Assembly (NCBI RefSeq): GCF_964194025.1
Contig: NC_134469.1
Location: 1,798,001-1,862,000, forward strand
Reading direction: 5' to 3'
Source: Convolutriloba macropyga
Taxonomy: Eukaryota
Length of the DNA: 64,000 nt
Under the pieces are notes generated by a model. It had not been told where the DNA came from and did no database searches. It worked only from the letters and a program-made list of their open reading frames with translations. This document shows positions 14,683 through 34,911 of this stretch, in pieces. Each line of letters begins with the position of its first letter. Position 1 is the stretch's first letter. Made by a program: the position numbers and the translations under genes.

Positions 14683-15830
14683 TGATCCTAGAAGAATCTT
14701 GCAAGATCATCATTCGCCTTGCAAAAATCTTGCAAGATCCTAGAAGAATCTTGCAAGATCATCATTCGCCTTGCAAGAATCTTGCAAGATCCTAGAAGAA
14801 TCTTGCAAGATCATCATTCGCCTTGCAAGAATCTTGCAAGATCCTAGAAGAATCTTGCAAGATCATCATTCGCCTTGCAAGAATCTTGCAAGATCCTAGA
14901 AGAATCTTGCAAGATCATCATTCGCCTTGCAAGAATCTTGCAAGATCCTAGAAGAATCTTGCAAGATCATCATTCGCCTTGCAAGAATCTTGCAAGATCC
15001 TAGAAGAATCTTGCAAGATCATCATTCGCCTTGCAAGAATCTTGCAAGATCCTAGAAGAATCTTGCAAGATCATCATTCGCCTTGCAAGAATCTTGCAAG
15101 ATCCTAGAAGAATCTTGCAAGATCATCATTCGCCTTGCAAGAATCTTGCAAGATCCTAGAAGAATCTTGCAAGATCATCATTCGCCTTGCAAGAATCTTG
15201 CAAGATCCTTGAGGAATCTTGCAAGATCATCATTCGCCTTGCAAGAATCTTGCAAGATCCTTGAGGAATCTTGCAAGATCATCATTCGCCTTGCAAGAAT
15301 CTTGCAAGATCCTAGAAGAATCTTGCAAGATCATCATTCGCCTTGCAAGAATCTTGCAAGATCCTAGAAGAATCTTGCAAGATCATCATTCGCCTTGCAA
15401 GAATCTTGCAAGATCCTAGAAGAATCTTGCAAGATCATCATTCGCCTTGCAAGAATCTTGCAAGATCCTAGAAGAATCTTGCAAGATCATCATTCGCCTT
15501 GCAAGAATCTTGCAAGATCCTAGAAGAATCTTGCAAGATCATCATTCGCCTTGCAAGAATCTTGCAAGATCCTAGAAGAATCTTGCAAGATCATCATTCG
15601 CCTTGCAAGAATCTTGCAAGATCCTAGAAGAATCTTGCAAGATCATCATTCGCCTTGCAAGAATCTTGCAAGATCCTAGAAGAATCTTGCAAGATCATCA
15701 TTCGCCTTGCAAGAATCTTGCAAGATCCTTGAGGAATCTTGCAAGATCATCATTCGCCTTGCAAGAATCTTGCAAGATCCTTGAGGAATCTTGCAAGATC
15801 ATCATTCGCCTAGCGAGAATTTTGCAAGAT
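14683..15830. repeat. 52-bp satellite, about 22 copies, built on the palindrome TCTTGCAAGA
   Basis: Unit gatcctagaagaatcttgcaagatcatcattcgccttgcaagaatcttgcaa, nearly invariant; variant gatccttgagg in four units. Confidence 0.95.
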
Positions 15831-16615
15831 TACTATTTATCCAATATGCAAATATGCAAATAATTGGAGAATGCCCGAACAGGACCAGAGAAATAGGAAT
15901 ACGTTGTTTCTCAAGGAAGCTATTTTCACAGCAACTTAAAAGCTTACTAAAGTTCAGACAATATCAACTTTGGCTCTTAAAAAATAGCTATAGTTACCTT
16001 CAATGCCCACAGGTAGAAATACCTGCAAAAATGAGACGGTAGCTTACGTTGAATAACAAGAGCCAGATGAGCCCGGACTTAAATGGGTCTCGAAACATTT
16101 CAGCGCTGAATCACCCTTTATCAATTGTAAAGCCCAAATTAAGTTATAAACATTGCTTATCAAGTGTATTTTAAGTTATGGGTCTTTCCCATTATTATCC
16201 TCAATATGACGAAATTGATGGCATTGAAGTTCAAACCTACGTTTGCACATATTCACAACAAAATTTTGCCGAAAAATCTCTTTTGTTTAAATAACAGAGG
16301 TCCATGCTTTAAAGCCCCCCCCCCCCACCAGCTTAGTGGTCAGGTAACGTAAAGCCCCCCCCCCCACACATCATGGTAATTGTAGCAAAATGGGTGGTGG
16401 ACTATAATTTTGTGCCAGTTTCATTTCAGAGAAAGCAGATCTCCTCTGTTTCTCTGCAGCTCAACAGGTGTTTGTCATTTGAAGCCCAAAGCGCACGTGC
16501 TATGTTAACTTCCACTGATTTACTATTTAAAAGAAATTTGAGACTAATGTTGTATAAATTACTTACTGGAAGGGAGTTTTATTCAGTTTTTTAAAACAGT
16601 TTCTTATCGCTTTCG

Positions 16616-17364: not shown

Positions 17365-19037
17365 GCTATGATCTTTTTTATTTTGTTGTTGAGTACGACC
17401 GTCACGCAACGAACCCGTGTAATGAAACGAGTAAGGGAAAGAGTTAATTGAGTTACAAAAGAGTACGCATGATATCAGAGACAAAGTAAGAAAAGAACCC
17501 TAACGTTAAGATGGCCACAGTCGTAGCCGTAGTCCAAAACTAAAGCCAAATTTGCAACTGTTTTCAAATTTTGCCTGACAATTACTAATTTGTAATTATT
17601 TATCTCTTCACAAGGCCCAATTTACGAGTTTTTATAAGTTTCTTTTGAATAAATAAAGCTGTAAAAAAAAATATTTGCTGCGCACAATATTTAATTTCCT
17701 TTCCAAGTAATGAAAATAATAAGTCGTCGAAATGTAGTTGCTAAAACAACCAAGTATATATCGGTTCATTGCCTCGTCGAATTGAAGCTAAGAGTTATGC
17801 CCAGAATAAATAATTACTGAGTAGAGAATTAATGAACACAATCAAATATTCTCCTGTTATTCAAATTTAAGAATCATAAACAACTTACAACAGTTGGAAG
17901 AATCCCGAATCCACTATGTCAGAGTAATTTAAGCTAATCCGAAAGATCGATTAATCGCTCTTTTCAACACTTTTTTTCTTCTTCTAGGAAAGTTGAACTC
18001 ACGCGTCAACTTCGTCTCTCCAACTATAACGAACTTATTTAACGAACTACTGCTTTTCAGATTCGCCAATCTCTCTCTGGTAGTTTTTCTGGTGCCTAAG
18101 GGTACTCAACCTTATCATTTTTTTTATCAGCAAAACGTAACGTGTCGTTCCTTTTAGAACATTCTGACCTAACGTCTAAGTGTTATAGTTGGCGTGGAAG
18201 GTCAGTCACAAGATGCCGCTTATCTTATGTTGATGTTTGTTCGAGATGACCGGAGCTGCCTGTTTATCTCGGTTTGATATTTTCAGAATATGGCACAATC
18301 CATGTTTCATGCTGAGCAATATGTGTGCAATTTTTCGCACGCTTGCTTTTTCCTTCCTAAGTAACGAATACGCATCCAATTTAAACTATGATACCTTTGT
18401 TTCCCATTTAGGCTGGAGTAATGTTCCGTTCTAAATAAAACTTTAACCGTTTCCTTAGAGTCATCAATAAAAGGAAAATAAAACTTAGCTCTTTCTGTCC
18501 CTTATTCCATTGTAGAATAGTTTCAGTGCTAATACTTTGGATTGACAGGTAATTTATCTCAACTTTCCACTCTGAACGAGGCCTTGGTAAAATGTTTTGA
18601 CTCTAGAAAAAATGTCGCTTCTTTCAAAGGAGTATAAGAAATTGGCCTTTCATCTATTTTCTATGTTTTACTTTAAAGGCCAAAAGAACGGTTTCGAGTA
18701 CCGGAAAAAGCCCGTTGTTTTTTTCAATGTGTAAGGAATTGTCCTAGGAGTGATCAGTTAAAATTTCATGGTGATCGGACTTGAGGAAGTAGAGTTTTCA
18801 AGACTTGCGGGGAGGGGTGGTGAAAATGCGGACGCCTGTATTTGGGACAATTAGGGCCCTGAAGCAGTACCAAAGAGTGGCAAATCAATATTTCATGCTC
18901 TGATAACTCAGTCAATGTGCGCACGCCATTTCTTGTTTGCCAATGATCTTATGCAAATACTAGCAAATCACCAACTAGCAAATTCATTAAACCTTAATTC
19001 CTACTAGCTTTGATTTACCTACTAACTTAGAGCGCCG

Positions 19038-19931
19038 ATGGATTTCCAATTGTATCAGTCTATTCTCAATTTTCATCGTCGTGGGACAATTCCAAAAGAT
19101 GTAAGTATTAATCGACAGAAAAGGCACCGTTTTAAACAATTATGTAGTCGCTACAGCAAACCCAAACTAACTCTTTTTAATAAAAAGACCGGACTCAAAT
19201 TATTGCACTCAAGGAGTGCAAAATTTATTATCCAAAAATTAAATCGGGCCCACGAGCATATTAAAGCAGTTGGGCTCGAACGGCTTGTTAAACAATCTTA
19301 TGATGCCCAGGGAGCCCAGCCTATCGTTCGAGAAGTAGTACGTAACTGTGATTATTGCAATGAAAAAATTACTCATCGCCGTTTTACCGGTCCCTTAGTT
19401 CATGCTTCTCGCCTTACACTGGATAGAATTTGTTATGAATTAGACCTAGTTATTACCGAAAGGCCGTTACTAGAAAAAAATTGCTTCAAGAACGCCCCTT
19501 CGTTAGATCCTACTTCTTTTATCCCTAAAACCGTGGACACTATTGATCCCGATTACAATTGCGTGTGCGCTGCACTTAGCACAATTCTGACCGGAAACCC
19601 TAATCAAGGCGGAAAAATTGAAGAAGTAATTCGTTCTTTACGAAAAGAAGGCCCGGACCGCCACTTATTAAATCTGATGGGCGCTGCCCCTTTTATTAAT
19701 GGCGCAGATGATCTTAATTTCGTTACAACAACAGATTTGAGAATGCTATCCCGAACCTTTAGAACTAATATTTATATGTTTTATGAGACCGATGAGTTCG
19801 AGCAAGCCCACTGGGATTGCTACACTGGAAATAAGATGGGCCCAAATAGAGGAAGAATTTACTTAAAGGCCGGCATGAGCGGTGGAACAATGCTTTGTTT
19901 TATTGTTACTCGTGTTAAGCAAAAAAAATGA
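19038..19931 (+). CDS. Second copy of the HHCC-OTU ORF (3' LTR), probably inactivated
   Basis: Eight amino-acid differences from the 310-aa copy including H69N and H286L; a 1-nt shorter A run alters the C-terminus (297 aa). Confidence 0.65.
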   Translation: MDFQLYQSILNFHRRGTIPKDVSINRQKRHRFKQLCSRYSKPKLTLFNKKTGLKLLHSRSAKFIIQKLNRAHEHIKAVGLERLVKQSYDAQGAQPIVREVVRNCDYCNEKITHRRFTGPLVHASRLTLDRICYELDLVITERPLLEKNCFKNAPSLDPTSFIPKTVDTIDPDYNCVCAALSTILTGNPNQGGKIEEVIRSLRKEGPDRHLLNLMGAAPFINGADDLNFVTTTDLRMLSRTFRTNIYMFYETDEFEQAHWDCYTGNKMGPNRGRIYLKAGMSGGTMLCFIVTRVKQKK

Positions 19932-20020
19932 GAAGTAAGTTGTTCAATTTAGATGACATAATTTATTAACCCGGACTAGCACACACATGACAGATATTTA
20001 AGTTAAATTAAAGTTCGCTT

Positions 20021-20374
20021 TTACACTGCATATGGACGCTCGATTTGCACTTTCTTCTTTATTTCCAATAGCGCTTGTTGCTCGGCTTTTTCGTTGTCAG
20101 ACAAGTCGCTATCACATGCCCGTTGATGCTGTTGTTCGTGTTGCTGTTGTTGTTGATCGTTTGGTGGCTGTTGTTGCTCGCTTGATTGCTGGGATTGATC
20201 ATCTGATTTCGCTGCGAGGTTCTTCTTTCTATTGTTAGACTTGCCGCTTTTTGTTCGCCTCTTTGCCTTCGTTTTGGAGTTTCGAATATGCTCTGCCCGT
20301 GGCGTTTTGCCAGCCACTGGAGGTAGTTTTATCGGGGCCTTTCCATGTCGCGCTTGAACAATTTTGCCGTCCAT
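20021..20374 (-). CDS. 3' LTR copy of the 117-aa ORF
   Basis: Same translation as 33924-34277. Confidence 0.55.
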   Translation of the reverse strand: MDGKIVQARHGKAPIKLPPVAGKTPRAEHIRNSKTKAKRRTKSGKSNNRKKNLAAKSDDQSQQSSEQQQPPNDQQQQQHEQQHQRACDSDLSDNEKAEQQALLEIKKKVQIERPYAV

Positions 20375-20871
20375 ACTGCGAGTAAGTTATATTTTAACGC
20401 CTGGCGAACAAGGGTAATAAGGGGCAAGGCCAAAAATAGCAATTAGCTATGTTCAGTTTTTAATGACCAAAAAAAGGGCACCAAATTGATTTCCTTTGAT
20501 TGGAGTTTCAGCAGGCTAAGTTTTAAAGTGAATGACCCCGAGGTTTTCCAACTCGAATAAACTTGGTCTTATTTGCCTTGCTCTAAATTGCGCCACAATT
20601 TTGTATGCCTCTTATCAGGTGTTATTTGCCGTGCAAAACTCCACTTTTGGTATTGTTGGTCATTTGTGTGCTAATTCGGTCTTATCTTTGTTAGAACAAG
20701 GTATTTGAGTCCTAAGTGTTTGATTCATTAGCCCTAATGTTAAGGCGCATATTTGTATTTGAGACCTGTCAAAATTAGGGCCTATTTATTTTACCCGCAA
20801 AAGTTCGGTGTGAAAGATAAAGTAGCGACTAACAAAGGTGTCAATAAACTACGCAGAAACTAAATTCTACA

Positions 20872-20883
20872 CCCTTCCCTTCT
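20872..20883 (-). promoter_or_regulatory. Polypurine tract
   Basis: AGAAGGGAAGGG on the minus strand directly abutting the TG of the 3' LTR. Confidence 0.85.
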
Positions 20884-21184
20884 GCATCATTATTCCCCCG
20901 AACAATCTTTGAGAAAGTTGCTCTAAGTGTAGGTTAGTTTTCGCCAGGTTCTACAAAGTTTGTGGTGGTGTTGAACTTAATTAAATTCAAAATTTGTTCC
21001 TTTTAGGAAATTGAATAACCGTCCTGTCGGCCCTCAAGTGCTTGAAATATTTTTATTCTCCCCTTGCATCTATCTGCACCAGTCAATTAGAAGGGTATCT
21101 TATATAGTAATTTTTTTTGCGTTGACAGTTCTTTTTTTTCAATTTCTACATGGTTTTCATGTGTGTTTTAGTCCTCAAACAACT

Positions 21185-21499
21185 ATGGGTAGCTTGTCGA
21201 CAGCCATTGCTGGATTTGGGGAGTACCCTGTCCGATTCCAGAATGATAAGGCGGTTGGTTTCACGGTCGTCTATCTGGACCGGACAAGGGCCATGAACCC
21301 CAGTGTTTCCAGAATTGTCGTCTTCAAGCAAGGCGGCGAAAGCGTCGAAGTTAAGCCGGAATCTTCGGAGCACCGGGACTTTGTGCGGGAGCTGCAGAGG
21401 TGGGATGAGGAATTGGTGCTGATGAGGCCAATTCCACCCGTCTATTTTCAATGCACCCACGCTATCAGTGCCCTCAAAAGCCGGTGTACGATGCAATAG
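21185..21499 (+). CDS. Antisense accessory ORF, 104 aa from the first ATG, MGSLST N-terminus
   Basis: GC-richer island starting at ATG 21185 inside the listed ORF 21011-21499; Gly2/Thr6 fits the N-myristoylation consensus. Confidence 0.45.
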   Translation: MGSLSTAIAGFGEYPVRFQNDKAVGFTVVYLDRTRAMNPSVSRIVVFKQGGESVEVKPESSEHRDFVRELQRWDEELVLMRPIPPVYFQCTHAISALKSRCTMQ

Positions 21500-21782
21500 C
21501 CTTCGTGCCACCCACCATCATTGAAAGGCCGTGGCCTTTCTCGACGCCACAAGATCGGCCGAACTGGTGGGTGGTAGACGAAAACTGAGTTTGAGTTATC
21601 TAAACTTGTAATTCTATCCTTAAACCCCTTTTAAATCTATGCTGTTGCTACTTTAATTCAGACTCTACAAACTGTTTGTTTTCTCTAAGGATATAATTAT
21701 AAATATAGTTAGCTTTGTATAAAAATTATCAAGAAACGGCAGAGTTCAATCCTTTTAGCACGAAGTCCATATACTACTTTAT

Positions 21783-22091
21783 TTATTGGTTTTTTCCCCA
21801 CATCTTTGGCGTCCAAGTGATTATCTTCTTTTCCGTTTGCGTGGACACATCCTTCAAACAAGGAGAATAAAGTATTGATTGGAATGCGGGTAACGGTTCA
21901 TTCGTCAAAGGGTTGACCCACTTAGATAACATAGCCGACTTAAATTCTTTGCCCGCCGCACTATCCAGTAAAAGCAATAATTCGTTTTCGTCTTCAAGTT
22001 GTAAAATAACAAACCTATCCTCGCAAAATTGTACCCGCTGGTATACGACAACCCAATCCAGAACTTTCGACTCCCAAATTAGAAGAACCAT
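21783..22091 (-). CDS. Accessory ORF, 102 aa, possible divergent U-box with a TQT motif
   Basis: ATG ORF containing GKEFKSAMLSKWVNPLTNEPLP and KDVSTQTE. Confidence 0.45.
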   Translation of the reverse strand: MVLLIWESKVLDWVVVYQRVQFCEDRFVILQLEDENELLLLLDSAAGKEFKSAMLSKWVNPLTNEPLPAFQSILYSPCLKDVSTQTEKKIITWTPKMWGKNQ

Positions 22092-22270
22092 GATGAAAAT
22101 GTTGTTGTTTTTTTAGGGATTATAGCTTTGATAGGCGCTGATTTTGATCTCGGGTTTTGTGGCCAAATGTATTAGTTACATTCCAGATAACAAACTTAAA
22201 TAGAGATAAATTTTGACCGCTTAAGTTGGACCGATCGGTTATATTTAATTGTCGGTTAAATCGTCGCTGC

Positions 22271-22807
22271 TCACATCCTCCCATTCACCTTCACCTTCTC
22301 GATTGTCCCGACGTGCGTAGAAAGGAGGCATCTCAGGTCCACCTTCGTTGCTAACATCTTCTTCGTTTCGGAATCTGGCTCCGCTGCCGTGGAGTCAGAG
22401 AGAACCCTGTATATTTCCACCGACGTATTCGCGTCTTCACGTTCTACAGGTCGAATAATGATTTTTATTCGTTCATTTGGAGCTAGAGGTCGATGGAGGG
22501 AGTACTTTACTTGGAATGAGTTTTCTTCTACTGAGTAGTCTTGGTCAAGGGTACCTGAATTATCCTCCGGTTTTCTATCCTCCACTAAATCCATAGTCCC
22601 CGCCTCGATAAGTAGTCGTGGTTCTGTTGACCAAGGGTTCGAAAGAAAGCAGTGGAACTCATAATACTCTGGTTCCCCAACTTCCAGAAGAATTACGTTC
22701 CCATCTATAAGATCCACCAAATGACCGTTCCATGTATCTTTGACGTCTCTAATTTTAAAAAGACGGCCAAGAGTAAAGCAGTGCCATTCGAAGTGTGTGC
22801 CACTCAT
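22271..22807 (-). CDS. Accessory ORF downstream of env, 178 aa, unknown function
   Basis: ATG-initiated, coding-like composition between AT-rich spacers, same strand as gag-pol-env; no recognised motif. Confidence 0.6.
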   Translation of the reverse strand: MSGTHFEWHCFTLGRLFKIRDVKDTWNGHLVDLIDGNVILLEVGEPEYYEFHCFLSNPWSTEPRLLIEAGTMDLVEDRKPEDNSGTLDQDYSVEENSFQVKYSLHRPLAPNERIKIIIRPVEREDANTSVEIYRVLSDSTAAEPDSETKKMLATKVDLRCLLSTHVGTIEKVKVNGRM

Positions 22808-23227
22808 TATTAGTACCTAGCGTTGAAACTCACTGAGGGTAGAATGATTTATTTTCTGTGTCAACTAATTAACTCAAATTTTACGGGTTCTCTTATCTAT
22901 TTAACGTTCGTATGCTTATCGTTCCGAGTTGAACTGTTGGCCGACCTCAAGTTCGCTCAGCCAAAGGGCGCAAGTGAAATCTTAGTGGTATCGGGATTTG
23001 TCGAGTACAACATACAAGTATTTAACTGTACAAATGAGTTTATAAATGAAAGCACCGGAATACTACTCATGAATAAAATCAAAACTGATTTTCCTAGTTA
23101 CAGTTAAGGGGTGATAGAACCATTTAAAGCACTTGTCTTAACAGGGTGGGCGAAAAAAAAATAGATACAAGTGGATAACTAACAGTTTCCGTTGTCATCG
23201 GCTCACTCTTCCCTTCACTTCTACAGT

Positions 23228-25553
23228 TTATAAAATCTTGACGCACGCCAACTCCTCTCGGTAGTCCCTGCTCCTCTGCGTTTTGCCACTGGATCCGGGG
23301 GGATAAGGTGTCGAAATGAAAGAGTCATCAAAGTCTTCTCCCAATTGAGTTGACTCCATCCCGTCGCGTTCAGAGTATGGTGGCACTTGAATGCGATCAG
23401 TCATTTTGAAATTCATTGGCCCTTGTCCACTCAAACCCGCATCTCCTCTTAGTAGGCGCTCCCAACAATTGAATCTACTCCTTCTGGCTCTCGGACTCGT
23501 CTGAGTACCAGCCGTATTCCCTTCGATAAATGCTTTGTTCATTATAACTCGGCAGAGTCCTGTGTACATCATCCAGAGTGCAATCACTAAGATTGCAGCT
23601 AAGTCAAACCATACAAACCAGCTGACAGGTCCACTGTGGTAAGCCCGCCAGTGAAATAGTGCATGCTGATTGATAATTCCTTGTGCAAAAGGTTTCGCGA
23701 TGGTTTTCATTGCTTCTTCATCTACGGTTCCTTCGGGTAGATCAACCATGTTCAAACGTAAAGTCTCCAACATCTGACTGTGAGCTTCCTCGCGAAACAC
23801 ATCTGGGATTTTCATTCCAGCTAGTTGTGTCTCCATTTCGTGCAATTCACCGAACAAAGTCCGCAGTAAGGGGTGTTGTTGAATCCTTACAACGAATCCG
23901 GTCTCGTACTGGCAAGTTCTTGGGTCCGGATATAATACCAAACTACCACTGGGGTCCTCTATGCGTCCTTTGCAGGGTGGTCGAATTAGGCAACTTTTGC
24001 AGCCGCTGATCCATTCTCCATTATCGAAGGCTTGTAAACTGTAGTTGAGCAGTCTGTAGTCGCTGGATCGCGAGTAAACCAAGTAGGTTGAGTCGTCCAA
24101 GTACTCCGCGTAAGGTTCTTCCGGTAAGGCTACCACCTGCTGTGCACAAAGCTTTAGAACTCATGTTTGCAAGTCGAAAAACAGACTAGAAAGGCACGTA
24201 GATTCTCCACTTCGTGACATTGAAAAAGGTTTTAGACACAGTTTAAGACGATTACTGCCGCTACAATGTGAAATGAGTTTCTCCTCCGTAACTTCGGCAA
24301 AATTATCTTTTCTTTCGGATATCAATAAGTAACTTCTCGAGAAACTGTATCGTGTCGCTGTTGACCCGTCTTCAATTGGTTGAGGTACTGGGACTGCGCG
24401 ATAAACTTTATGAAATCCGTTAGTGTGGTGTACAGGCACGTTTATCAGGACGTTTACGGCTGTTTCTGTAAGTACTGTTGACTCTACTAGTTCAAAGCCG
24501 TAATACGTCATTAAATCAGAACGGGGTATAGCTTCCTGCATCCTGTCAAGTTTGAGTCCGTTAAGAACTTGTCGTAAAATTTTTGGAGGTACAAGTGTTG
24601 CTGGAATATAGCCCCGAGCTAAACTGCTCAACGCGTCATCTAAGATGTAACCAAAATTGTGAAGTCCGACTTTGAATGCCGCCAATTCTGCTCTCAAAGC
24701 AAGCATAGTTTGGGTGAAGTTCGTCATTCCTACATTGAACTGAGCAGCAACCACTGCTGAGCTCTGTCTGTTGTTGTAGCAGGCCCCCCAATGTGTTTCT
24801 CCAATGTCGGTTTTATTGATAAGCTCTCCCAAAACGTTCCTGATCTTATGGAAATTGTCATTAGAATGAATTATGACTGATCATCTTTAATTGCCCTTGA
24901 GTTTTGTTTAATGAGTGGCCCAGCAGGTGGATTCGTTCCCCTGATTCAAGAGTGATCGTTCGCACCGCTCCGTCCAGAAATTCTGTCTCTTCACCAAGTC
25001 TATCCAAGTCTGCACCGCCACACAATCCGAAGAAAGAGAAGTATTGACAAAAACCAGCTTTTAGGACTGGCGCCAGGACAATAGCAGCAGCTATCCCACC
25101 TAGCAACGGTTTGACGAATCGCTTTGACCTCGACAAGCCTCCTTCTGTTCCATTCAAGTATGTTGCAGCCCTTTCCCGCATTTCGGTAAGAACAATATCA
25201 ATTTCTAGCATTTCATATTCCAATCCCTTCAGTGCAAGATATGTCGTATTCATCAAAACTTCAGTGGTAAAAGTGTTTTTGCAAAACTGTCCATGATGCT
25301 TCCTCCATCGCATTGCAAATTCGTATTGGAATTCTTGGAAAGCAATGTCCAGAGATGTCAAGTTGAGGGCAAGTAGGACTGGCAGCGGCACTGATACCCA
25401 AGTTGATTCCAGCGCACTCGCAATGATGACAGGGGTTTCCGTTGTGAAGACTGCGCCAGCTGTATGGTTAGTAGTTAAACAGATAGCACATCTCAGCAGG
25501 GAAAATAGGAAGAGTAGCCTCAGTGTCAGGAATCTGTCCGTTGTTCCTGTCAT
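23228..25553 (-). pseudogene. env: env, class I fusion glycoprotein (baculovirus F / gypsy env-like), about 775 aa, disrupted
   Basis: Signal peptide, furin site RSKR followed by hydrophobic FVKPLLGGIAAAIVLAPVL, heptad region, Cys-rich segment, TM WFVWFDLAAILVIALWMMY. One frameshift near 24870 and one in-frame TGA at 24161-24163 account for the three listed ORFs. Confidence 0.85.
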
Positions 25554-25736
25554 GACCGCGTTGACTCTAAAAGTAACAAAACGTTAAATTAAGTCATTAA
25601 AATCCGACCAAAGCCTATATTTTTCCGTATACAGAGAACCGATTAGTTTAAGTCAATATTAATCAATAACTGAGATTCATAAAAAGCAAGGGAGAAGGAT
25701 CCGGGTAACAAGTTTAAGTAAACGAGGAAAAAGTGT

Positions 25737-28700
25737 TTATTCATCGATTCCCAGTCGTATGACCGGTGCTCGGATCCTTGCCGAGCGGCGTAGCTCAACG
25801 GGTTCCTCCACTGAATTTTGGTTAATCGGTCGTGTTGCTTGTTCAACCTCTGCGTCTGGTGATCTACTCTCCCCGACGCTGTGAGGTTCTAACTGCCTTT
25901 GAACCAGTTGTCTTTGGTATTCCGGATCATTTTCACGGCTATTAGTATCCGGGGCGGCCTGATCGCCCAATTGATCAGCTGACTGCTCGACTATAGGATT
26001 ATTGATTACTCCAACTTCCTGTCCCACAGCAGGCTGTGGGACTTGAATCCCATTTCTTGGCACCAATATCGGCGGCCAGGGAATTGGGTCTGGATCCAAT
26101 TGCTCCCATTCGTCAACTTCCAGTGGTTCCTCGTAAAAATTCGTTGAACGAAACGGTGTGGCTCTACGCTCGCTCGTTTCCGGTTCCTCTTCCACGAATG
26201 GTTTAAGAAGGTTGTAGTGGAGAATACGCCATTTATCACGCCTTTGGGGTTTACTAACTTTGTAATTAACTTCCGAAGTTCTCTCAAGAACAATGTACGG
26301 TCCCTCCCACGGAAGAAAGAATTTTTTTGATGTAGCTTTATGTTTTGAGAAAACCCAAACTTTGTCATCGACTTCGTATGGTTTTCCAAAAACTTTCTTA
26401 TGAAATTGATCTTTTTGTCGGTTTTGATTTACTCCCAAAAGTTCCCGTGCATGAGAATGGGCCTCCCTGAATTGCCTATCGAGCCAGTCAACAAACTCGT
26501 TCTGGGTCCGCTCTTGATCGTGGGGCTTCGGGTAGAACAGATCAATAGGATATTGGCACTCCTGTCCATAGACGAGACTAAACGGAGTGGCTCCTGTCGT
26601 CCTATGAATAGTCGTATTATAGAGAAAATTGACATAAGGCAGCATTGTGTCCCAATCTCGAGGGTTTTCAGCGCAATATTTCGAGAGAACATCGGCAATA
26701 ACACGGTTATGTCGTTCCACTTGACCATTTTCTTGAGGGTGATACGGAGATGTTCTTGTTTTGTCCATTTTAAGCAATTTACAGAGTTCTTTAATCAAGT
26801 CACTTCCAAAGTTTTTTCCTTGGTCAGTGTGAAGTACCTCGGGCACAACAAAATGAAGGACCCAGCATTCTACAATTTCTTTTGCCACATATTTTGCTTC
26901 GGTTACAACAAGTGGAACACTGATTGCATTTTTTGTGAACAAATCCGTCATAACAAGAATGTACTTCGCTCTTGACCGTGCGGCTAGTGTAACTGGTCCT
27001 AATATATCAGCAGCGACCGTGTGAAAGCGAATACCAACTTTGAAGGGACTTAATTCTGCGGTACGTTGCCTGCCTGCCGTGGTCCGAGCTGCACATGGAA
27101 GACACCAAGAATGTTTTTTCTCTATGTCACGCCTCATGAAGGGCCACCAGAACCTCTGCCTGATTCGCATCAGTGTTTTTTCTACTTTGAAATGACCTCC
27201 ACTCACTGGGGAAGCGTGAAGTTGATCCAAAATTTCTTTTCTAAAAGAAACAGGTACAATCAGCTGCAAATGGGGTTCGTTCTTCTCTGGTTGAAACCAC
27301 TTCCTGTACAAAACTCGATTCTTAAGAACAAGCTCTGACCACCTTGACCAGTAGGCTACTACTTCAGGTCCATGCTGAACTGCCTGTTCTTTTAGAATTA
27401 GGTTAGGGCCCAGAGGCGAGCAGCTACTTTCTGATCTTGTTGGTGCCCAGTACAAAATACGGCTGATTGCCTCATCTTCATGCTGCAACCGTTCTATATC
27501 TGAGTCTGTGCGAGTCCATGTTATAGCGACCCCCTCTTCATTTTTGTCATCTATGGTTTCTGTAATAGCGTCAACCATAGCACAACGTTCACGTACCCTT
27601 TTTAGGGCTTCCTCGATTTCTTGAGGTTCGGGACACTGCCCCCATACCTGTTCTTTTTCGCCCGGCTCCCATTCAGGCTCTTCTTCCATCATCCGAGACA
27701 ACCCATCCGCATTGGCATGTTTGTTGCCCGCGCGGTGAACAATTTCGTAATTGAACTCTTGCAAATGTTGGAGCATTCTGAACGTCATGCCGTCTGCATT
27801 TTGCCTGAATAGCCATTTTAAGCTGGCGTGATCTGTACGTATGACAAAACTGAGTCCCCATATATAATGTTTGAACCATTTCAAAGCCTGAACTACCGCC
27901 AGGGCTTCCCGCTTCGTTGTAGAGTACATAGTTTCGGTCTTACTCGGGCTCCTACTTGCAAATAATATAGGATGTTCCACGCCATCGATGAAATTTGAAA
28001 GTACAGCACCCAGACTGACGTTGCTTGTATCTGTGTCAATGATAAAGGGGCAGTCATACCGAGGAAACTGTAGGACAGGTGCTGTAGCTAGTTCGAGCCC
28101 CAGTCGATCGAATGCCATTTGACAACAGGGAGTCCACTCAAATCGAGCGTTTTTCTTTGTTAGTTCATGCAAGGGACGAGCAATTTGTGCAAAGTCTTTC
28201 ACAAAGCATCGATAGTAATTGCAGAATCCAACGAATGACCGTACTTGTTTAACAGTTTTTGGCTCTGGCCATTCTCTGACAGCAGAAACCTTTTGAGGGT
28301 CTGGTCGAGCTCCCTCTTTATCGATAACATGACTGAGGTATACAACTTGTTGCTGAAGAAGTCTGCATTTCTTGGGCTTAAGTTTCAAGTTTGCTGCTCG
28401 CAACAGTTTGAATATACCTTCAATGTGTTTGAAGTGTTCTTCCTCAGTCGAATCGTACGCCAAAGCATCATCAAGAAAGATTAGAACCCACTTCCAGAGG
28501 TGATCTTTGAAAAGATTGTTCATAAGCCTTTGAGAGGTCCCGGGGGAATTAGATAGACCAAAAGGCATTTTAATGTATTCATACAGCCCACCATCAGGTG
28601 TGACGAACGCTGTTTTCTGTCTATCCTCTGGTGCTACCGGTACCTGCCAGTAGCCACTTGCTAAATCAAGAGAAGAAAAAAATTTCGCTCCCCTCAAAGC

Positions 28701-29987
28701 ATCGAAGCTCTGATCTATTTTTGGTATAGGAAAGGCGTCTTTCACCGTAACATCGTTAAGGTCGCGGTAGTCCACGCAGAACCTCCAACTACCATCCTTT
28801 TTCTTTTGAAGCACAATAGGAGCACTATAGGGACTCGATGAAGGCTGAATGACTCCCTTCTCCAGCATGCTCTTCAGTTCTTCTTGGATAATAGGTATCT
28901 TGGCCGGCGAAATACGATGCGGAGGTTTTTTGATGGGTGGGGTATCACCTGTGTCAATTTGATGCTGAACAATGTCGGTGCATCCAAGTTCATTGTTTTT
29001 CAACGCAAATACATCCCGATATTCTCGCACTAGTGTTCTCAGCCGATCGAGAGCAACACCAGAAACGCCCGGTGCAGATAATTCCAAAATTTGATCAACT
29101 TCCTGGTCTAGAGTGGGATGATCTTGGGCTTTATAGACTGTGTGAGCAACCCAATTCAAAACCTCGTCATCAGTGTCTGTCCATTGCTCATCTTCGGTTT
29201 CACTTAGATAAATTCTTTCTGAATCTTTGACCTGTGTTTCTCTAGAGAGTTGTGCTGCCATGAGATAGTCAGTTTCTTTGGGACTAGCGCCAGCGACTGC
29301 CTGCAGCTGATGATCGCTGACAAACTTTTTATCCTGCATTGACGGGTCCATTTCAGTTTCGCGACAGTAACGGTAGCTGCCAACTGCAGTCAGAGAAACC
29401 ATGCGCATTACCACCGCCGAACTTTCTTTGCTGCCTGTCCACATTTCGTTTGATCTAAAGTCAATTGCAAAACCATGGCGTTTCATTTCCTTGAGGCCAA
29501 GTATCATCTGAGGCTTCAAGTTCTGCAACACTAGAACGTGTATTTCCTCGCATATAGAACCCAACTTTAACTCCAATACTGCGCGACCAAGAACATTTAT
29601 AGTCTTTCCGTCGGCTGACTCTAAGCGGCCTTTGTATGGCAAAATTCTCGCAAAGCGATCCAAGCTGAAGAGTTTTTCTGCTTGCATTAGATTTGTTGAT
29701 GCCCCCGTATCAATCAATATTTCCGTTATCGAGTCGTTCACTATTCCGTCAACCACGGCTGCTTCGGAACCCTCATCAAAATCCGACGAATCAAACTTTT
29801 TCTCATCTTCTATGGCGGTTGTATTTGTTGCTACGTGCTGTTGTTTGGCCTTTTCGTCGCAAAATTTAACTTTTCTTGCGTCAAAGTTTGCATTATCATT
29901 ATCTTTTAGTCTATTTGCTTTGAATTCGGCCGGGATAAAGCCTTCTTTACGAAAAATTGTGGCCCTCCCGGCCTCTAGTAGTTTAAA
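25737..29987 (-). CDS. pol: Pol polyprotein (PR, RT, RNase H, integrase), expressed by -1 frameshift from gag
   Basis: LIDTGAS protease; WRFCVDYR, LDLASGYWQ, MPFGL and FLDD RT; TDHASL and NADGLSR RNase H; HHCC plus D-D-E (ADILGP, TDQG, VERHN) and WEGPY integrase; C-terminal LRRSAR. The frame is open but several conserved residues are substituted. Confidence 0.95.
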   Translation of the reverse strand, partial: FKLLEAGRATIFRKEGFIPAEFKANRLKDNDNANFDARKVKFCDEKAKQQHVATNTTAIEDEKKFDSSDFDEGSEAAVVDGIVNDSITEILIDTGASTNLMQAEKLFSLDRFARILPYKGRLESADGKTINVLGRAVLELKLGSICEEIHVLVLQNLKPQMILGLKEMKRHGFAIDFRSNEMWTGSKESSAVVMRMVSLTAVGSYRYCRETEMDPSMQDKKFVSDHQLQAVAGASPKETDYLMAAQLSRETQVKDSERIYLSETEDEQWTDTDDEVLNWVAHTVYKAQDHPTLDQEVDQILELSAPGVSGVALDRLRTLVREYRDVFALKNNELGCTDIVQHQIDTGDTPPIKKPPHRISPAKIPIIQEELKSMLEKGVIQPSSSPYSAPIVLQKKKDGSWRFCVDYRDLNDVTVKDAFPIPKIDQSFDALRGAKFFSSLDLASGYWQVPVAPEDRQKTAFVTPDGGLYEYIKMPFGLSNSPGTSQRLMNNLFKDHLWKWVLIFLDDALAYDSTEEEHFKHIEGIFKLLRAANLKLKPKKCRLLQQQVVYLSHVIDKEGARPDPQKVSAVREWPEPKTVKQVRSFVGFCNYYRCFVKDFAQIARPLHELTKKNARFEWTPCCQMAFDRLGLELATAPVLQFPRYDCPFIIDTDTSNVSLGAVLSNFIDGVEHPILFASRSPSKTETMYSTTKREALAVVQALKWFKHYIWGLSFVIRTDHASLKWLFRQNADGMTFRMLQHLQEFNYEIVHRAGNKHANADGLSRMMEEEPEWEPGEKEQVWGQCPEPQEIEEALKRVRERCAMVDAITETIDDKNEEGVAITWTRTDSDIERLQHEDEAISRILYWAPTRSESSCSPLGPNLILKEQAVQHGPEVVAYWSRWSELVLKNRVLYRKWFQPEKNEPHLQLIVPVSFRKEILDQLHASPVSGGHFKVEKTLMRIRQRFWWPFMRRDIEKKHSWCLPCAARTTAGRQRTAELSPFKVGIRFHTVAADILGPVTLAARSRAKYILVMTDLFTKNAISVPLVVTEAKYVAKEIVECWVLHFVVPEVLHTDQGKNFGSDLIKELCKLLKMDKTRTSPYHPQENGQVERHNRVIADVLSKYCAENPRDWDTMLPYVNFLYNTTIHRTTGATPFSLVYGQECQYPIDLFYPKPHDQERTQNEFVDWLDRQFREAHSHARELLGVNQNRQKDQFHKKVFGKPYEVDDKVWVFSKHKATSKKFFLPWEGPYIVLERTSEVNYKVSKPQRRDKWRILHYNLLKPFVEEEPETSERRATPFRSTNFYEEPLEVDEWEQLDPDPIPWPPILVPRNGIQVPQPAVGQEVGVINNPIVEQSADQLGDQAAPDTNSRENDPEYQRQLVQRQLEPHSVGESRSPDAEVEQATRPINQNSVEEPVELRRSARIRAPVIRLGIDE
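29928..29987 (-). promoter_or_regulatory. -1 ribosomal frameshift signal
   Basis: Slippery T TTA AAC in the gag frame (29987-29981), 7-nt spacer, then GGCCGGGA (29973-29966) pairing with TCCCGGCC (29935-29928). pol is in the -1 frame. Confidence 0.85.
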
Positions 29988-31126
29988 GGACCGGTCTGTT
30001 GTTGGGTTTGGCGCTCTGGGCAATCCTTAACAAAATGACCTTCCTGACCACATTGGAAACACTGCCTTCCCGCAACTGCTAATCGTCTGTCGAGGCTGTT
30101 TTGTTGCGCTGGTACACCACTGTACTGCGCATTGTTCGGTTTTGGACTGATGAATTGTTGACCGTAACGGCTATCGGGCGGATAAGGATTGTATAGACGT
30201 TTCTCGTCGCTTTCCTGTTTTGGTTTTTTGTCACTATGTGGGACCTCATATTGCTTTGAAATTACTGACGTCACAAATTTGCTCATCATATTTGACATAT
30301 TCTTCATAAACTCGGCCTGACTGTTTACTAGTTGATCAATCTTAGCATTGACAGACCCCGAAAGATCCGTAGATTTCTCAGCAGTTGCGAACACTCTGGA
30401 TGCATTGCCTCTCTGCATCAATTCATTACTCTGAGTATTCCCCTGAATCTCAACGGGGTTTTCAACAACTGATCTTAAGGACGCTAACCTTCGTCGCTGT
30501 CTCATACGAGAATTACGTGCGACAGCATCAAGGCTCAGTGCCCTATTTATAGCAGCGGAGAAGTTTTGGGGATCTTCTCTAAGTAAAAGTTCTTGGATTT
30601 CAGCGTCGTAGAGCCCATCGATAAACTGTTCGCGGTTCATATCGTCACGGGTTGCAGCATTCATGTTATGGTTCGCAACCTCCCCGGTGGACCGTATTCT
30701 CCTTGAAAATTCCTGAATTTCCTCCTTTTCGCCTTGAATAAGGTTTTTGAATTCGGCTCGAGCAGTTCGTTGGTTTCGAAATGGCATCATTCGAGGGTCT
30801 AAGTATTCAAACAATCGCTCCAGAGTAGGTGCCGGGTGCCCATCTTCTTGTTCTCGAAAGTGGTTGGGCATTGCAGTGTATTCATCAAGGGCCCAGCCTG
30901 TGAGGCAGGTTGGGACACAAGCCATTGCTTGTTCTTCATCCCAACGATTCGACTCAACAATGCATAAAAAATGTTTTTTCCAATCTACCCAAGTTTTGTA
31001 TATCAGATTAGGAAAACGATCGGGTTGGCGTGCACCTCGCCCATACAATCCTTGACCATTCAGTGCGTCCGCAGCTTGAATGGCTGCTTCGGCAATTCGT
31101 TGAATATCTTCCGCTTGCAACGCCAT
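29975..31126 (-). CDS. gag: Gag, 383 aa, with one CCHC zinc knuckle
   Basis: Capsid-like W..W..HF...NRW...L.G.A segment, QG..E.I..F motif, CFQCGQEGHFVKDC knuckle. Confidence 0.92.
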   Translation of the reverse strand: MALQAEDIQRIAEAAIQAADALNGQGLYGRGARQPDRFPNLIYKTWVDWKKHFLCIVESNRWDEEQAMACVPTCLTGWALDEYTAMPNHFREQEDGHPAPTLERLFEYLDPRMMPFRNQRTARAEFKNLIQGEKEEIQEFSRRIRSTGEVANHNMNAATRDDMNREQFIDGLYDAEIQELLLREDPQNFSAAINRALSLDAVARNSRMRQRRRLASLRSVVENPVEIQGNTQSNELMQRGNASRVFATAEKSTDLSGSVNAKIDQLVNSQAEFMKNMSNMMSKFVTSVISKQYEVPHSDKKPKQESDEKRLYNPYPPDSRYGQQFISPKPNNAQYSGVPAQQNSLDRRLAVAGRQCFQCGQEGHFVKDCPERQTQQQTGPLNY

Positions 31127-31407
31127 TTTTGTTATGTAATTGCTTAGCCGCTTAAACTAGAGTGTTCTTCTAAATTTTGCGAATCCACTTCTTGTCTTAC
31201 TTCGCGATCTCGCCGGAGTCTGAGTAGTTCTCTCAATCTATCAGCCCGACTTCTGGTTTGAGTTAATTGATTTGTACTCGGGAATTCGGGTAGGTGTTCT
31301 TCGCTTCTTTGGGCGAGTATTGAATCCAATTTTGAGGAAGTATGTTGTACACCTCTTGAATTGAGACCCAACTTCGTAAAATCTAATCTATTTTAATCTG
31401 TCAGAAA

Positions 31408-31425
31408 GCCCACCCAGGAGCGCCA
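31408..31425 (-). promoter_or_regulatory. Primer-binding site, tRNA-Asn-like
   Basis: Minus strand TGGCGCTCCTGGGTGGGC; its complement GCCCACCCAGGAGCGCCA resembles the 3' end of metazoan tRNA-Asn(GTT) (...GCCCACCCAGGGACGCCA in human). Confidence 0.8.
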
Positions 31426-32939
31426 CTGTAGAATTTTGTATTTTTATCGTTAGAAGGCTGACCGGACTGGCAAGCGCCCAAAACTCTATCAAATTTGAAA
31501 GGTTCTTCGAAGAAAAGTGAGTCCTTCTGACAATTAGGTATAAAGTTTTGTCCCCTGTGCTCTCTCAAAGCTGTAAAAAAAAATATTTGCTGCGCACAAT
31601 ATTTAATTTCCTTTCCAAGTAATGAAAATAATAAGTCGTCGAAATGTAGTTACTAAAACAACCAAGTATATATCGGTTCATTGCCTCGTCGAATTGAAGC
31701 TAAGAGTTATGCCCAGAATAAATAATTACTGAGTAGAGAATTAATGAACACAATCAAATATTCTCCTGTTATTCAAATTTAAGAATCATAAACAACTTAC
31801 AACATTTGGAAGAATCCCGAATCCACTAAGTCAGAGTAATTTAAGCAAATCCGAAAGATCGATTAATCGCTCTTTTTAACACTTTTTTTCTTCTTCTAGG
31901 AAAGTTGAACTCACGCGTCAACTTCGTCTCTCCAACTATAACGAACTTATTTAACGAACTACTGCTTTTCAGATTCGCCAATCTCTCTCTGGTAGTTTTT
32001 CTGGTGCCTAAGGATACTCAACCTTATCAGTTTTTTTATCAGCAAAACGTAACGTGTCGTTCCTTTTAGAACATTCTGACCTAACGTCTAAGTGTTATAG
32101 TTGGCGTGGAAGGTCAGTCACAAGATGCCGCTTATCTTATGTTGATGTTTGTTCGAGATGACCGGAGCTGCCTGTTTATCTCGGTTTGATAATTTCAGAA
32201 TATGGCACAATCCATGTTTCATGCTGAGCAATATGTGTGCAATTTTTCGCACGCTTGCTTTTTCCTTCCTAAGTAACGAATATGCATCCAATTTAAACTA
32301 TGATACCTTTGTTTCCCATTTAGGCTGGAGTAATGTTCCGTTCTAAATAAAACTTTAACCATTTCCTTAGAGTCATCAAAAAAGGAAAATAAAACTTAGC
32401 TCTTTCTGTCCCTTATTCCATTGTAGAATAGTTTCAGTGCTAATACTTTGGATTGACAGGTAATTTATCTCAACTTTCCACTCTGAACTGGTAAAATGTT
32501 TTGACTCTAGAAAAAATGTCGCTTCTTTCAAAGGAGTATAAGAAATTGGCCTTTCATCTATTTTCTATGTTTTACTTTAAAGGCCAAAAGAACGGTTTCG
32601 GGTACCGGAAAAAGCCCGTTGTTTTTTTCAATGTGTAAGGAATTGTCCTAGGAGTGATCAGTTAAAATTTCATGGTGATCGGACTTGAGGAAGTAGGGTT
32701 TTCAAGACTTGCGGGGGGGTGGTGAAAATGCGGACGCCTGGATTTGGGACAATTAGGGCCCTGAAGCAGTACCAAAGAGTGGCAAATCAATATTTCATGC
32801 TCTGATAACTCAGTCAATGTGCGCACGCCATTTCTTGTTTGCCAATGATCTTATGCAAATACTAGCAAATCACCAACTAGCAAATTCATTAAACCTTAAT
32901 TCCTACTAGCTTTGATTTACCTACTAACTTAGAGCGCCG

Positions 32940-33872
32940 ATGGATTTCCAATTGTATCAGTCTATTCTCAATTTTCATCGTCGTGGGACAATTCCACAAG
33001 ATGTAAGTATTAATCGACAGAAAAGGCACCGTTTTAAACAATTATGTAGTCGCTACAGCAAACCCAAACTAACCCTTTTTAATAAAAAGACCGGACTCAA
33101 AGTATTGCACTCAAGGAGTGCAAAATTTTTTATCCAAAAATTACATCGGGCCCACGAGCATATTAAAGCAGTTGAGCTCGAACGGCTTGTTAAACAATCT
33201 TATGATGTCCAGGGAGCCCAGCCTATCGTTCGAGAAGTAGTACGTAACTGTGATTATTGCAATGAAAAAATTACTCATCGCCGTTTTACCGGTCCCTTAG
33301 TTCATGCTTCTCGCCTTACACTGGATAGAATTTGTTATGAATTAGACCTAGTTATTACCGAAAGGCCGTTACTAGAAAAAAATTGCTTCAAGAACGCCCC
33401 TTCGTTAGATCCTACTTCTTTTATCCCTAAAACCGTGGACACTATTGATCCCGATTACAATTGCGTGTGCGCTGCACTTAGCACAATTCTGACCGGAAAC
33501 CCTAATCAAGGCGGAAAAATTGAAGAAGTAATTCGTTCTTTACGAAAAGAAGGCCCGGACCGCCACTTATTAAATCTGATGGGCGCTGCCCCTTTTATTA
33601 ATGGCCCAGATGATCTTAATTTCGTTACAACAACAGATTTGAGAATGCTATCCCGAACCTTTAGAACTAATATTTATATGTTTTATGAGACCGATGAGTT
33701 CGAGCAAGCCCACTGGGATTGCTACACTGGAAATAAGATGGGCCCAAATAGAGGAAGAATTTACTTAAAGGCCGGCATGAGCGGTGGAACAATGCATTGT
33801 TTTATTGTTACTCGTGTTAAGCAAAAAAAAATGAGAAGTAAGTTGTTCAATTTAGATGACATAATTTATTAA
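32940..33872 (+). CDS. LTR-encoded antisense protein: integrase-type HHCC zinc finger + OTU-like cysteine protease (apparently intact copy)
   Basis: H69/H74...C104xxC107 preceded by a GIN1/Ginger-like N-terminal segment. IDPDYNCVCAALSTILTG resembles the OTU D-x-N-C box; TDL..LS..F..NIY, W..Y, IYL and H286 follow. Confidence 0.7.
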   Translation: MDFQLYQSILNFHRRGTIPQDVSINRQKRHRFKQLCSRYSKPKLTLFNKKTGLKVLHSRSAKFFIQKLHRAHEHIKAVELERLVKQSYDVQGAQPIVREVVRNCDYCNEKITHRRFTGPLVHASRLTLDRICYELDLVITERPLLEKNCFKNAPSLDPTSFIPKTVDTIDPDYNCVCAALSTILTGNPNQGGKIEEVIRSLRKEGPDRHLLNLMGAAPFINGPDDLNFVTTTDLRMLSRTFRTNIYMFYETDEFEQAHWDCYTGNKMGPNRGRIYLKAGMSGGTMHCFIVTRVKQKKMRSKLFNLDDIIY

Positions 33873-33923
33873 CCCGGACTAGCACACACATGACAGATAT
33901 CTAAGTTAAATTAAAGTTCGCTT

Positions 33924-34277
33924 TTACACTGCATATGGACGCTCGATTTGCACTTTCTTCTTTATTTCCAATAGCGCTTGTTGCTCGGCTTTTTCGTTGT
34001 CAGACAAGTCGCTATCACATGCCCGTTGATGCTGTTGTTCGTGTTGCTGTTGTTGTTGATCGTTTGGTGGCTGTTGTTGCTCGCTTGATTGCTGGGATTG
34101 ATCATCTGATTTCGCTGCGAGGTTCTTCTTTCTATTGTTAGACTTGCCGCTTTTTGTTCGCCTCTTTGCCTTCGTTTTGGAGTTTCGAATATGCTCTGCC
34201 CGTGGCGTTTTGCCAGCCACTGGAGGTAGTTTTATCGGGGCCTTTCCATGTCGCGCTTGAACAATTTTGCCGTCCAT
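33924..34277 (-). CDS. LTR-encoded 117-aa basic / poly-Q / acidic protein, function unknown
   Basis: ATG ORF with K/R cluster (KTKAKRRTKSGKSNNRKK), Q-rich tract and acidic helix; identical translation in both LTRs; AATAAA about 55 nt downstream on the minus strand. Confidence 0.55.
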   Translation of the reverse strand: MDGKIVQARHGKAPIKLPPVAGKTPRAEHIRNSKTKAKRRTKSGKSNNRKKNLAAKSDDQSQQSSEQQQPPNDQQQQQHEQQHQRACDSDLSDNEKAEQQALLEIKKKVQIERPYAV

Positions 34278-34911
34278 ACTGCGAGTAAGTTATATTTTAA
34301 CGCCTGGCGAACAAGGGTAATAAGGGGCAAGGCCAAAAATAGCAATTAGCTATGTTCAGTTTTTAATGACCAAAAAAAGGGCACCAAATTGATTTCCTTT
34401 GATTGGAGTTTCAGCAGGCTAAGTTTTAAAGTGAATGACCCCGAGGTTTTCCAACTCGAATAAACTTGGTCTTATTTGCCTTGCTCTAAATTGCGCCACA
34501 ATTTTGTATGCCTCTTATCAGGTGTTATTTGCCGTGCAAAACTCCACTTTTGGTATTGTTGGTCATTTGTGTGCTAATTTGGTCTTATCTTTGTTAGAAC
34601 AAGGTATTTGAGTCCTAAGTGTTTGTTTCATTAGCCCTAATGTTAAGACGCATATTTGTATTTGAGACCTGTCAAAATTAGGGCCTATTTATTTTACCCG
34701 CAAAAGTTCGGTGTGAAAGATAAAGTTGCGACTAACAAAGGTGTCAATAAACTACGCAGAAACTAAATTCTACAATAATGTTAACTTTGCAAAAAGATTG
34801 TGACCAAGCGGTAGAGTTCGTTCCAGTCGAGTTCTGCTTAATTTAGCAATGTGAGTTATTTTCCTGACCATTTCTCGGTGATTGTTCAATTCAATTCAAA
34901 AATGCGAACAG

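Follow-up and report, generated by a model that had tools for sequence, protein, structure and literature searches.

Ginger1 transposases combine an H2C2 zinc-binding domain, a DDE catalytic core, a GPY/F motif and a C-terminal OTU domain (Bao, Kapitonov and Jurka 2010, PMC2836005), and the OTU domains of both Ginger1 and the Helentrons have been suggested to act in transposition (PMC2836005, PMC4067079). Here, we analyze a 64,000-nucleotide stretch of contig NC_134469.1 (positions 1,798,001 to 1,862,000 of the forward strand; hereafter "the window", to whose own numbering all coordinates refer unless another locus is named), which has no N bases and which carries on its minus strand, at 17655..34774, a Ty3/gypsy long terminal repeat (LTR) retroelement. 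Inside each LTR of this element, on the strand opposite to gag and pol, lies an open reading frame (ORF) for a protein with an integrase-like N-terminal region and a predicted OTU-fold domain. We read this ORF as a selected accessory gene of its Ty3/gypsy lineage and its product as probably an integrase-tethered deubiquitinase, and we put the probability of this reading at roughly 0.6.

Genes beyond the usual set, some of them antisense, have precedents among LTR-bearing elements. Deltaretroviruses and lentiviruses have antisense genes, and the sag gene of mouse mammary tumor virus (MMTV) lies in the LTR. Antisense ORFs have been described between pol and the LTR of plant Retand/Tat elements (PMC11963269, PMC7264820), as have extra ORF3s in the LTR elements of bdelloids (PMC5408684), and an antisense gene inside the LTR of human immunodeficiency virus type 1 (HIV-1) has been claimed (PMC1654176).

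The gene in the upstream LTR opens with ATG and runs from 32940 to 33872 on the plus strand (LTR positions 903–1835), encoding 310 residues; the LTR reaches ~1.5 kb further upstream of this ATG and 0.9 kb further downstream of the ORF. A second copy in the downstream LTR (19038..19931, plus strand) encodes 297 residues and has 8 residue differences from the first, two of which hit conserved motif positions. The usual length in the family is 297–299 residues, the 310-residue form having a 13-residue C-terminal extension, and a possible polyadenylation signal, ATTAAA, which is a consensus match only, begins 38 nt past the ORF stop (33910..33915, plus strand). Because the gene sits in the LTR, every full copy of the element has it twice and every solo LTR has it once. 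An initial account of this stretch, made from its letters and translations (below, the sequence-only reading), had described a 310-residue ATG ORF lying entirely within the LTR, antisense to the element and present in both LTRs, and had quoted the residues H69, H74, C104, C107, D172-Y-N-C175, T232-D233-L, N244-I-Y, W259, I274-Y-L and H286; the ORF, its second copy and each of these residues are where that reading had placed them.

The modeling described below shows a protein of two predicted domains, an integrase-type head without a catalytic core and an OTU cysteine-protease fold. Residues 1 to ~115 (32940..33284, plus strand) correspond, by Pfam, profile and fold comparison, to an integrase N-terminal extension followed by an HHCC zinc-binding domain with H69, H74, C104 and C107 as ligands. 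The only Pfam match in the window protein is Integrase_H2C2 (PF17921), at 16.4 bits and an E-value of 0.0097, which is under the gathering cut-off of 25.5 bits; the same domain is matched by 20 of the 59 family members, with P0083 (27.5 bits), P0061 (30.4 bits) and P0074 (27.5 bits) above the cut-off. Of 121 gypsy pol proteins, 77 are matched in their HHCC region (E < 1e-3) by a family profile covering the N-terminal 125 columns, and the His-His-Cys-Cys ligand spacing of H2C2 is matched by the family, with the ligands kept in 78–100% of distant homologues (H69 in 95%, H74 in 89%, C104 in 100% and C107 in 78%). The structural model of residues 1–150 has a predicted local distance difference test (pLDDT) score of 85, and its top Foldseek matches are the integrase N-termini of Moloney murine leukemia virus (MoMLV, 3nnq), Ty3 (7q5b) and prototype foamy virus (PFV), with probabilities of 0.94–1.00 at weak E-values of 0.03–1.2. 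When the family alignment was compared with the integrase segment of the window's own element using hhalign, the HHCC residues were aligned at a probability of 1.5%, a single-sequence template being uninformative in this comparison. No match to an rve/integrase core was obtained with Pfam in the window protein or in any of the 59 family members, and only ~50 residues separate the HHCC domain from the OTU domain.

Residues ~160–297 (33417..33830, plus strand) make up the predicted OTU-fold domain, as indicated by the AlphaFold2 model, matches in the PDB and BFVD, and column conservation. The model, built on a 59-sequence alignment, reaches a pLDDT of 91.7 and a predicted template modeling score (pTM) of 0.75. 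In it, the N174-C175 box lies at the first turn of a helix spanning residues 175–185 and H286 lies in a strand spanning residues 284–295, while between them a helix that contains T-D233 is followed by an N-I-Y strand; we read this T-D-x-x-x-L-A-R...N-I-Y element as the helix-strand motif that OTU domains typically contain. In the Foldseek search against the PDB, the best 50 matches were all OTU domains, with probabilities of 0.92–1.00 and target template modeling (TM) scores of up to 0.64, including the OTU of Qalyub virus (E-value 2e-4), OTUD3 (TM 0.64), OTUD1, OTUD5, A20, Cezanne, and the OTUs of Crimean-Congo hemorrhagic fever virus (CCHFV) and Wolbachia. The matches in BFVD were viral OTU proteins as well as retroviral Pol fragments consisting of integrase N-termini.

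Scanned exhaustively with phmmer, 1.84 billion representative proteins yielded 66 homologues, each of at most 286 residues and some of them full-length at 23–37% identity, and a profile search of a 5.8-billion-protein set added only unnamed fragments. The family is found in few assemblies only, and many of its copies are decayed. Besides the zinc ligands, the residues kept in distant homologues include G118 (89%), H122 (83%), N174 (80%), C175 (90%), C177 (82%), D233 (96%), R239 (85%) and W259 (76%). The domain assignments of the sequence-only reading, namely an N-terminus of integrase type with no DDE core behind its zinc domain and an OTU layout over residues ~165–292, agree with the domain and fold matches above, and both C175 and H286 prove to be conserved in homologues (90% and 67% of distant rows). 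Its choice of D172 as the Asp of the catalytic triad is not supported, this residue being kept in just 18% of distant rows.

The antisense LTR ORF is a real gene under selection. Four other loci, from ENA assembly ERZ25071359 (L001, L007, L008 and L009), hold the same LTR at 85–92% identity. Between subfamily copies (the window, L001, L007 and L008), the ratio of nonsynonymous to synonymous differences (pN/pS, here taken as dN/dS) is 0.31–0.60, with one-sided Fisher p-values from 2e-2 to 5e-9, and it stands at 0.44 (p 1e-8) when the comparison is made with the copy in L002, which is 59% identical; dN/dS between family members is well below 1. The per-domain ratios are nearly all below 1 (0.28–0.48), with the exception of the N-terminal half in the L001/L008 pair (0.99). 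In an alignment of six LTR copies, there are 1–2 gap columns in the ORF, compared to 27–150 in each flanking LTR section, and few stretches of the LTR evolve as slowly as the half that codes for the OTU domain. Four further loci have an intact ORF of 297–299 residues; with L001 and L009 being the same locus, these correspond to three independent insertions, namely two solo-LTR loci and one near-complete element. One 90% cluster of the family has 63 member sequences, and many other copies are truncated, which is normal for the genes of mobile elements.

The position of the gene is conserved well beyond this subfamily. On contig ctg178582 of assembly ERZ25074608, two proteins that are 29% identical to the window protein (P0065 and P0035) are encoded at a distance of 11,351 bp from each other, each within one of a pair of direct repeats (96.7–99.2% identity), both copies being decayed toward their ends. 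These repeats flank homologues of gag (38% identical), pol (~60%, with a range of ~40–65%) and ORF3, all on the strand opposite to the gene. The gene is therefore antisense in both LTRs of a second, distant gypsy family as well, and because both families keep it there, the antisense LTR location is older than the split of these two well-separated families. We note that L010 and L005 are excerpts of one public contig, with an identical 9,396-bp overlap and common coordinates, and that genomic context was considered for copies other than P0025 and P0026, whose contigs are too short. In the paralogous element L008, the ORF again lies in the upstream LTR; the DAAF9 gene adjoins this paralogue.

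Two copies are found in other surroundings. P0083 is XP_075260017.1, a 309-residue NCBI gene model from the acoel Convolutriloba macropyga, with a 10.4-kb annotated intron (GTAAGT donor, TTTTAG acceptor) located exactly at the domain junction (L004:10001-21335, OZ077311.1). This intron is filled with ~2.4-kb tandem repeats, part of which recur just downstream of the gene, and there is no gag or pol within 10 kb. Similarly, no gag and pol were found near the copy in L006. For both the acoel and the L006 copies, a solo LTR, a domesticated copy and a cellular source are all possible.

Taking these observations together, the function that we propose is as follows. The gene would be driven by its own promoter, located in the ~1.5 kb of LTR that precedes the ATG, and its product would be an active deubiquitinase. 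Within the pre-integration complex, the integrase-like head would dock the protein on the integrase of the element or on the DNA ends of the LTRs, and from there it could strip ubiquitin or a ubiquitin-like tag from proteins of the element or from nearby host proteins. Removal of such a tag could protect these proteins from degradation, or could modulate the repair or chromatin response at the site of integration. For the OTU domains carried by Ginger1 and Helentron transposons, the same role has been put forward. A more elaborate version, which we offer as a tentative one, is that of a gypsy lineage with a self-contained LTR gene, in which the antisense LTR promoter expresses an integrase-NTD-tethered deubiquitinase (NTD, N-terminal domain), solo LTRs and full copies supply this factor in trans to shield the pre-integration complex or to counter ubiquitin-dependent host control, and intron-bearing copies such as that in acoels represent a cellular source or a domestication.

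Several observations weigh against the reading of this gene as an accessory deubiquitinase of the element. At the sequence level, the Pfam OTU family (PF02338) has no match at E-value thresholds of 1 or 10 in any of the 59 family members, there is no named OTU among the 66 phmmer homologues, a profile search of the PDB finds nairovirus OTUs at E-values of ~1.5–1.8 only, and sequence searches of the PDB gave no significant match; as there is no sequence-level OTU match, membership of the OTU class rests on the fold and on the layout of the motifs. The putative catalytic H286 is kept in 88% of the close rows covering the column but in only 67% of distant rows, though many of the latter are decayed or truncated. 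In addition, D172, the candidate third catalytic residue, is not conserved, and there is no acidic residue two positions past H286. The two copies in the window differ at 9 nucleotides, 8 of which are nonsynonymous, amounting to neutral drift since insertion, which is the expectation for a resident copy. Docking of the head in the pre-integration complex is a step that we purely infer. Finally, a cellular role is possible because the acoel homologue has an annotated intron and lies more than 10 kb from any gag or pol.

The incomplete triad leads to the alternative that survives these data best, although we still consider it unlikely. Here, the protein would be a self-regulator, with the integrase-like head acting as a decoy on integrase or the LTR ends and so damping integration as a form of copy-number control, and the OTU domain being a ubiquitin-binding or inactive module. 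Such a role would suit a protein whose best conserved sequence signature in common with integrases is its N-terminal region and whose triad is incomplete by sequence, and the amount expressed from solo LTRs would follow copy number. However, the Asn-Cys box, D233 and the His are conserved at 67–96% over deep divergence, and the OTU half evolves slowly (with the per-domain dN/dS of 0.28–0.48), which is not easily reconciled with a passive module.

If the intron of the acoel gene is instead given more weight, the HHCC-OTU protein could be primarily the product of a cellular gene, either picked up by the element or tamed by the host, with the LTR copies as by-products without a role in the element. 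XP_075260017.1, with its GT-AG intron between the domains and its lack of neighboring gag or pol, and L006, which likewise has neither gene nearby, are in favor of such an origin. We nevertheless regard it as improbable: this protein differs by 71% between two gypsy families that nonetheless have it at the same antisense LTR position, there is purifying selection between element subfamilies, the family is rare, occurring in few assemblies with many decayed copies in the manner typical of element genes, and the acoel intron, being full of tandem repeats, could be a secondary insertion.

The sequence-only reading had proposed that a Ginger-like gene was captured and then lost its core. Its premise, that some Ginger1 transposases carry a C-terminal OTU, is correct (PMC2836005); the capture itself is not supported by these data. 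A related reading would make the ORF the relic of a Ginger1-like DNA transposon nested in an ancestral LTR, from which the DDE core has been lost and which persists as a functionless hitchhiker. Ginger1 transposases do share the domains at the two ends of the protein, namely the N-terminal H2C2 and the C-terminal OTU (PMC2836005). Against this, there are no terminal inverted repeats flanking the ORF within the LTR, the GPY/F motif and the DDE core (rve) are absent behind the zinc domain, with no remnant of the core in the ~50 residues between the domains, and there is no Ginger1 transposase or GIN1 among the 66 homologues of the exhaustive phmmer scan, in which no Ginger1 sequence was compared directly. 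Selection on the ORF and the deep conservation of its position also speak against a dead passenger. We therefore reject the nested-transposon reading, given the missing flanking repeats and the selection, and consider a relic of this kind very unlikely; duplication of a gypsy integrase head and its fusion to an OTU domain is an origin equally as possible as capture from Ginger. That the ORF arose by chance in a long noncoding LTR, for which nothing speaks beyond the unusual location, can be dismissed as having next to no likelihood, as at ~39% GC and a stop frequency of ~0.065 per codon the arithmetic from base composition gives an expectation for ORFs of 310 codons of only ~1e-9 per start position, or ~1e-4 per window (128,000 positions), and as the ORF has distant homologues, a confident fold with OTU matches, a nearly indel-free alignment and a dN/dS below 1.

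We now turn to the carrier, which is a Ty3/gypsy LTR retroelement of ~17.1 kb (17655..34774, minus strand) in the order LTR, gag, pol, ORF3 region, LTR, delimited by its direct repeat, its Pfam domains and the LTR ends of paralogous copies. Between the direct repeats, gag, pol and the ORF3 region all lie on the minus strand, in Ty3/gypsy order, and the hallmarks of this class are present, that is, TG..CA LTR ends, a primer-binding site (PBS), a polypurine tract (PPT), a gag with CCHC motif, and a pol in the order protease, reverse transcriptase, RNase H, integrase. The gag ORF (29975..31126, minus strand) is intact and encodes 383 residues with a CCHC zinc knuckle (Pfam zf-CCHC); the pol ORF (25737..30023, minus strand), likewise intact, encodes 1,428 residues with Pfam matches to an aspartyl protease, reverse transcriptase, RNase H and integrase (H2C2, rve and p58_C). 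A 1,428-residue relative at 96% identity to the window pol exists; in the pol search, the relatives at at least 58% identity were metagenome proteins, and named proteins reached at most 47%. Two pol relatives at 59% identity (P0148 and P0150) carry GDSL lipase/esterase Pfam domains; one of the two is labeled as a protein from a bacterial metagenome-assembled genome, with contamination being probable. A GDSL-type lipase/esterase accessory activity has been reported for LTR elements of bdelloid rotifers (PMC5408684).

Downstream of pol, in the env position, three consecutive ORFs form the ORF3 region (23228..25553, minus strand), whose pieces have no match among Pfam families. The ORF3 homologues in the related element L005 are broken up in other places than those in the window, and because the two copies are split differently, this region was probably once one longer gene of ~750 residues; if so, the window copy has two interruptions, namely a frame change and a stop. 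The element is flanked by three tandem arrays, which are a 52-bp satellite with ~27 units at 14519-15962, a 1,485-bp unit present four times at 49789-55121, and a 1,686-bp unit present twice at 6926-9960, in a stretch of strong GC skew (0.26–0.38 at 6001-10000).

Self-comparison of the window identified the LTRs as a direct repeat, 17655-20871 against 31567-34774, at 98.8% identity. The limits of the upstream copy follow from other insertions: the LTR match stops at window position 31426/31427 in L001, L007 and L009, and in L008 it runs on into the internal region. Because the solo LTRs and the paralogous element extend to 31427, the complete LTR is 31427..34774 (minus strand), and the downstream LTR (17655..20871, minus strand; 3,217 bp, 98.8% identical to the upstream LTR) is short by ~140 bp, lost at its outer end. 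The complete LTR is 3,348 bp long, as set against the solo LTRs L007 and L001, and is bounded by a 10-bp terminal inverted repeat, TGTAGAATTT...AAATTCTACA; its start, TGTAGAATTT, is at 34774, and its end, AAATTCTACA, the inverted complement of the start, is at 31427. Bounds of 31567..34774 with a guessed 4-bp target duplication were also considered, and were discarded because three loci run 140 bp further, to the inverted-repeat end and the PBS-like site. The latter, as read from the sequence, is a primer-binding-site-like stretch with a TGG start at 31409..31425 (minus strand), one base beyond the LTR end, and a polypurine tract of 12 purines (20872..20883, minus strand), identified in the same way, abuts the downstream LTR on its upstream side. 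Sense-strand AATAAA and TATAAA motifs occur only at LTR positions 82–1176, whereas a short U5 would predict other places.

With the downstream LTR of the window truncated, the target-site duplication is assessable in the solo LTR L007 rather than in the window copy. The target duplication of L007 is 5 bp long (ATTAT), whereas in L001, also a solo LTR, only 4 of the 5 bases match. The ATTAT pentamer adjoins the LTR start both in the window (34775-34779) and at the independent solo LTR L007 (L007:11872-11876), which hints at an AT-rich target preference. L001 and L009 are two versions of one locus, as their left flanks (~8.4 kb) are 99.6% identical; identity falls to 94% over the solo LTR and the next ~4 kb on its right, a pattern that suggests either an error in joining the assembly or two haplotypes affected by gene conversion. 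The LTR also holds a second small ORF on the sense strand of the element (33924..34277, with a copy at 20021..20374, minus strand), which encodes 117 residues that are basic and then Q-rich, and whose status is uncertain. It is intact in 4 of 6 compared LTR copies, in one of which it is 84 nt shorter, in frame, and no Pfam family matches it; whereas it may represent another gene housed in the LTR, it may equally be an accident of low-complexity sequence.

Compared with the systems introduced at the outset, the window gene resembles Ginger1 in having a gypsy-integrase-type H2C2 domain and an OTU cysteine-protease domain in one protein of an invertebrate mobile element (PMC2836005). Ginger1, however, moves by cut-and-paste, is bounded by terminal inverted repeats and has a full DDE core and GPY/F between these domains. 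The window gene has neither core nor inverted repeats, it is carried by an LTR retroelement, and the phmmer scan detected no sequence similarity to Ginger1. Helentrons and animal Helitrons likewise have an OTU-like cysteine protease as an extra transposon ORF, kept across families and suspected of a role in transposition (PMC4067079), but in a rolling-circle DNA element, without an integrase-like head and outside terminal repeats. With the viral OTU deubiquitinases, such as that at the N-terminus of the nairovirus L protein, and with OTUD1, OTUD3 and OTUD5, the window protein has in common the layout of Cys-box, mid-helix and His-strand, and these are its best structural matches (probability 1.00, TM 0.5–0.64); the identity to viral and cellular OTUs is only 9–18%, the viral ones sit in large polyproteins, and the OTU of the window protein is known from its predicted fold. 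The N-terminal extension fold and HHCC ligands are those of gamma- and spumaretrovirus and Ty3 integrases (3nnq, 7q5b, 3l2q), in which the catalytic core and C-terminal domain come next, whereas here an OTU fold follows. Finally, the plant, bdelloid and retroviral extra ORFs are also genes beyond gag-pol-env, some antisense and, in the case of sag, inside the LTR; the plant antisense ORFs, however, lie outside the LTR, sag is on the sense strand, and none of these genes encodes an OTU or integrase-like domain.

We found no published case of an OTU gene in an LTR retroelement, or of a fusion of an OTU to a core-less integrase head; the coverage of the literature is incomplete, and this is absence of evidence only. 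Transposon-encoded OTU proteases recur, as in Ginger1 and the Helentrons, yet to our knowledge nobody knows their job. In the present gene, the OTU is separate from any transposase core and is joined solely to an integrase domain, on a retrovirus-like carrier. The N-terminal domain of integrases mediates multimerization and contacts with the DNA ends. An OTU fused only to an integrase domain on such an element therefore points to the integration complex as its site of action, and the compact 297-residue protein offers itself for the study of transposon OTU function. The locus also illustrates that an LTR can hold a complete, selected, antisense protein gene, which is duplicated at every insertion and survives in solo LTRs, and which annotation pipelines that take LTRs as noncoding would overlook. 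In relation to the known systems, the gene is best read as adding a variant to the known theme of transposon-encoded OTU proteases.

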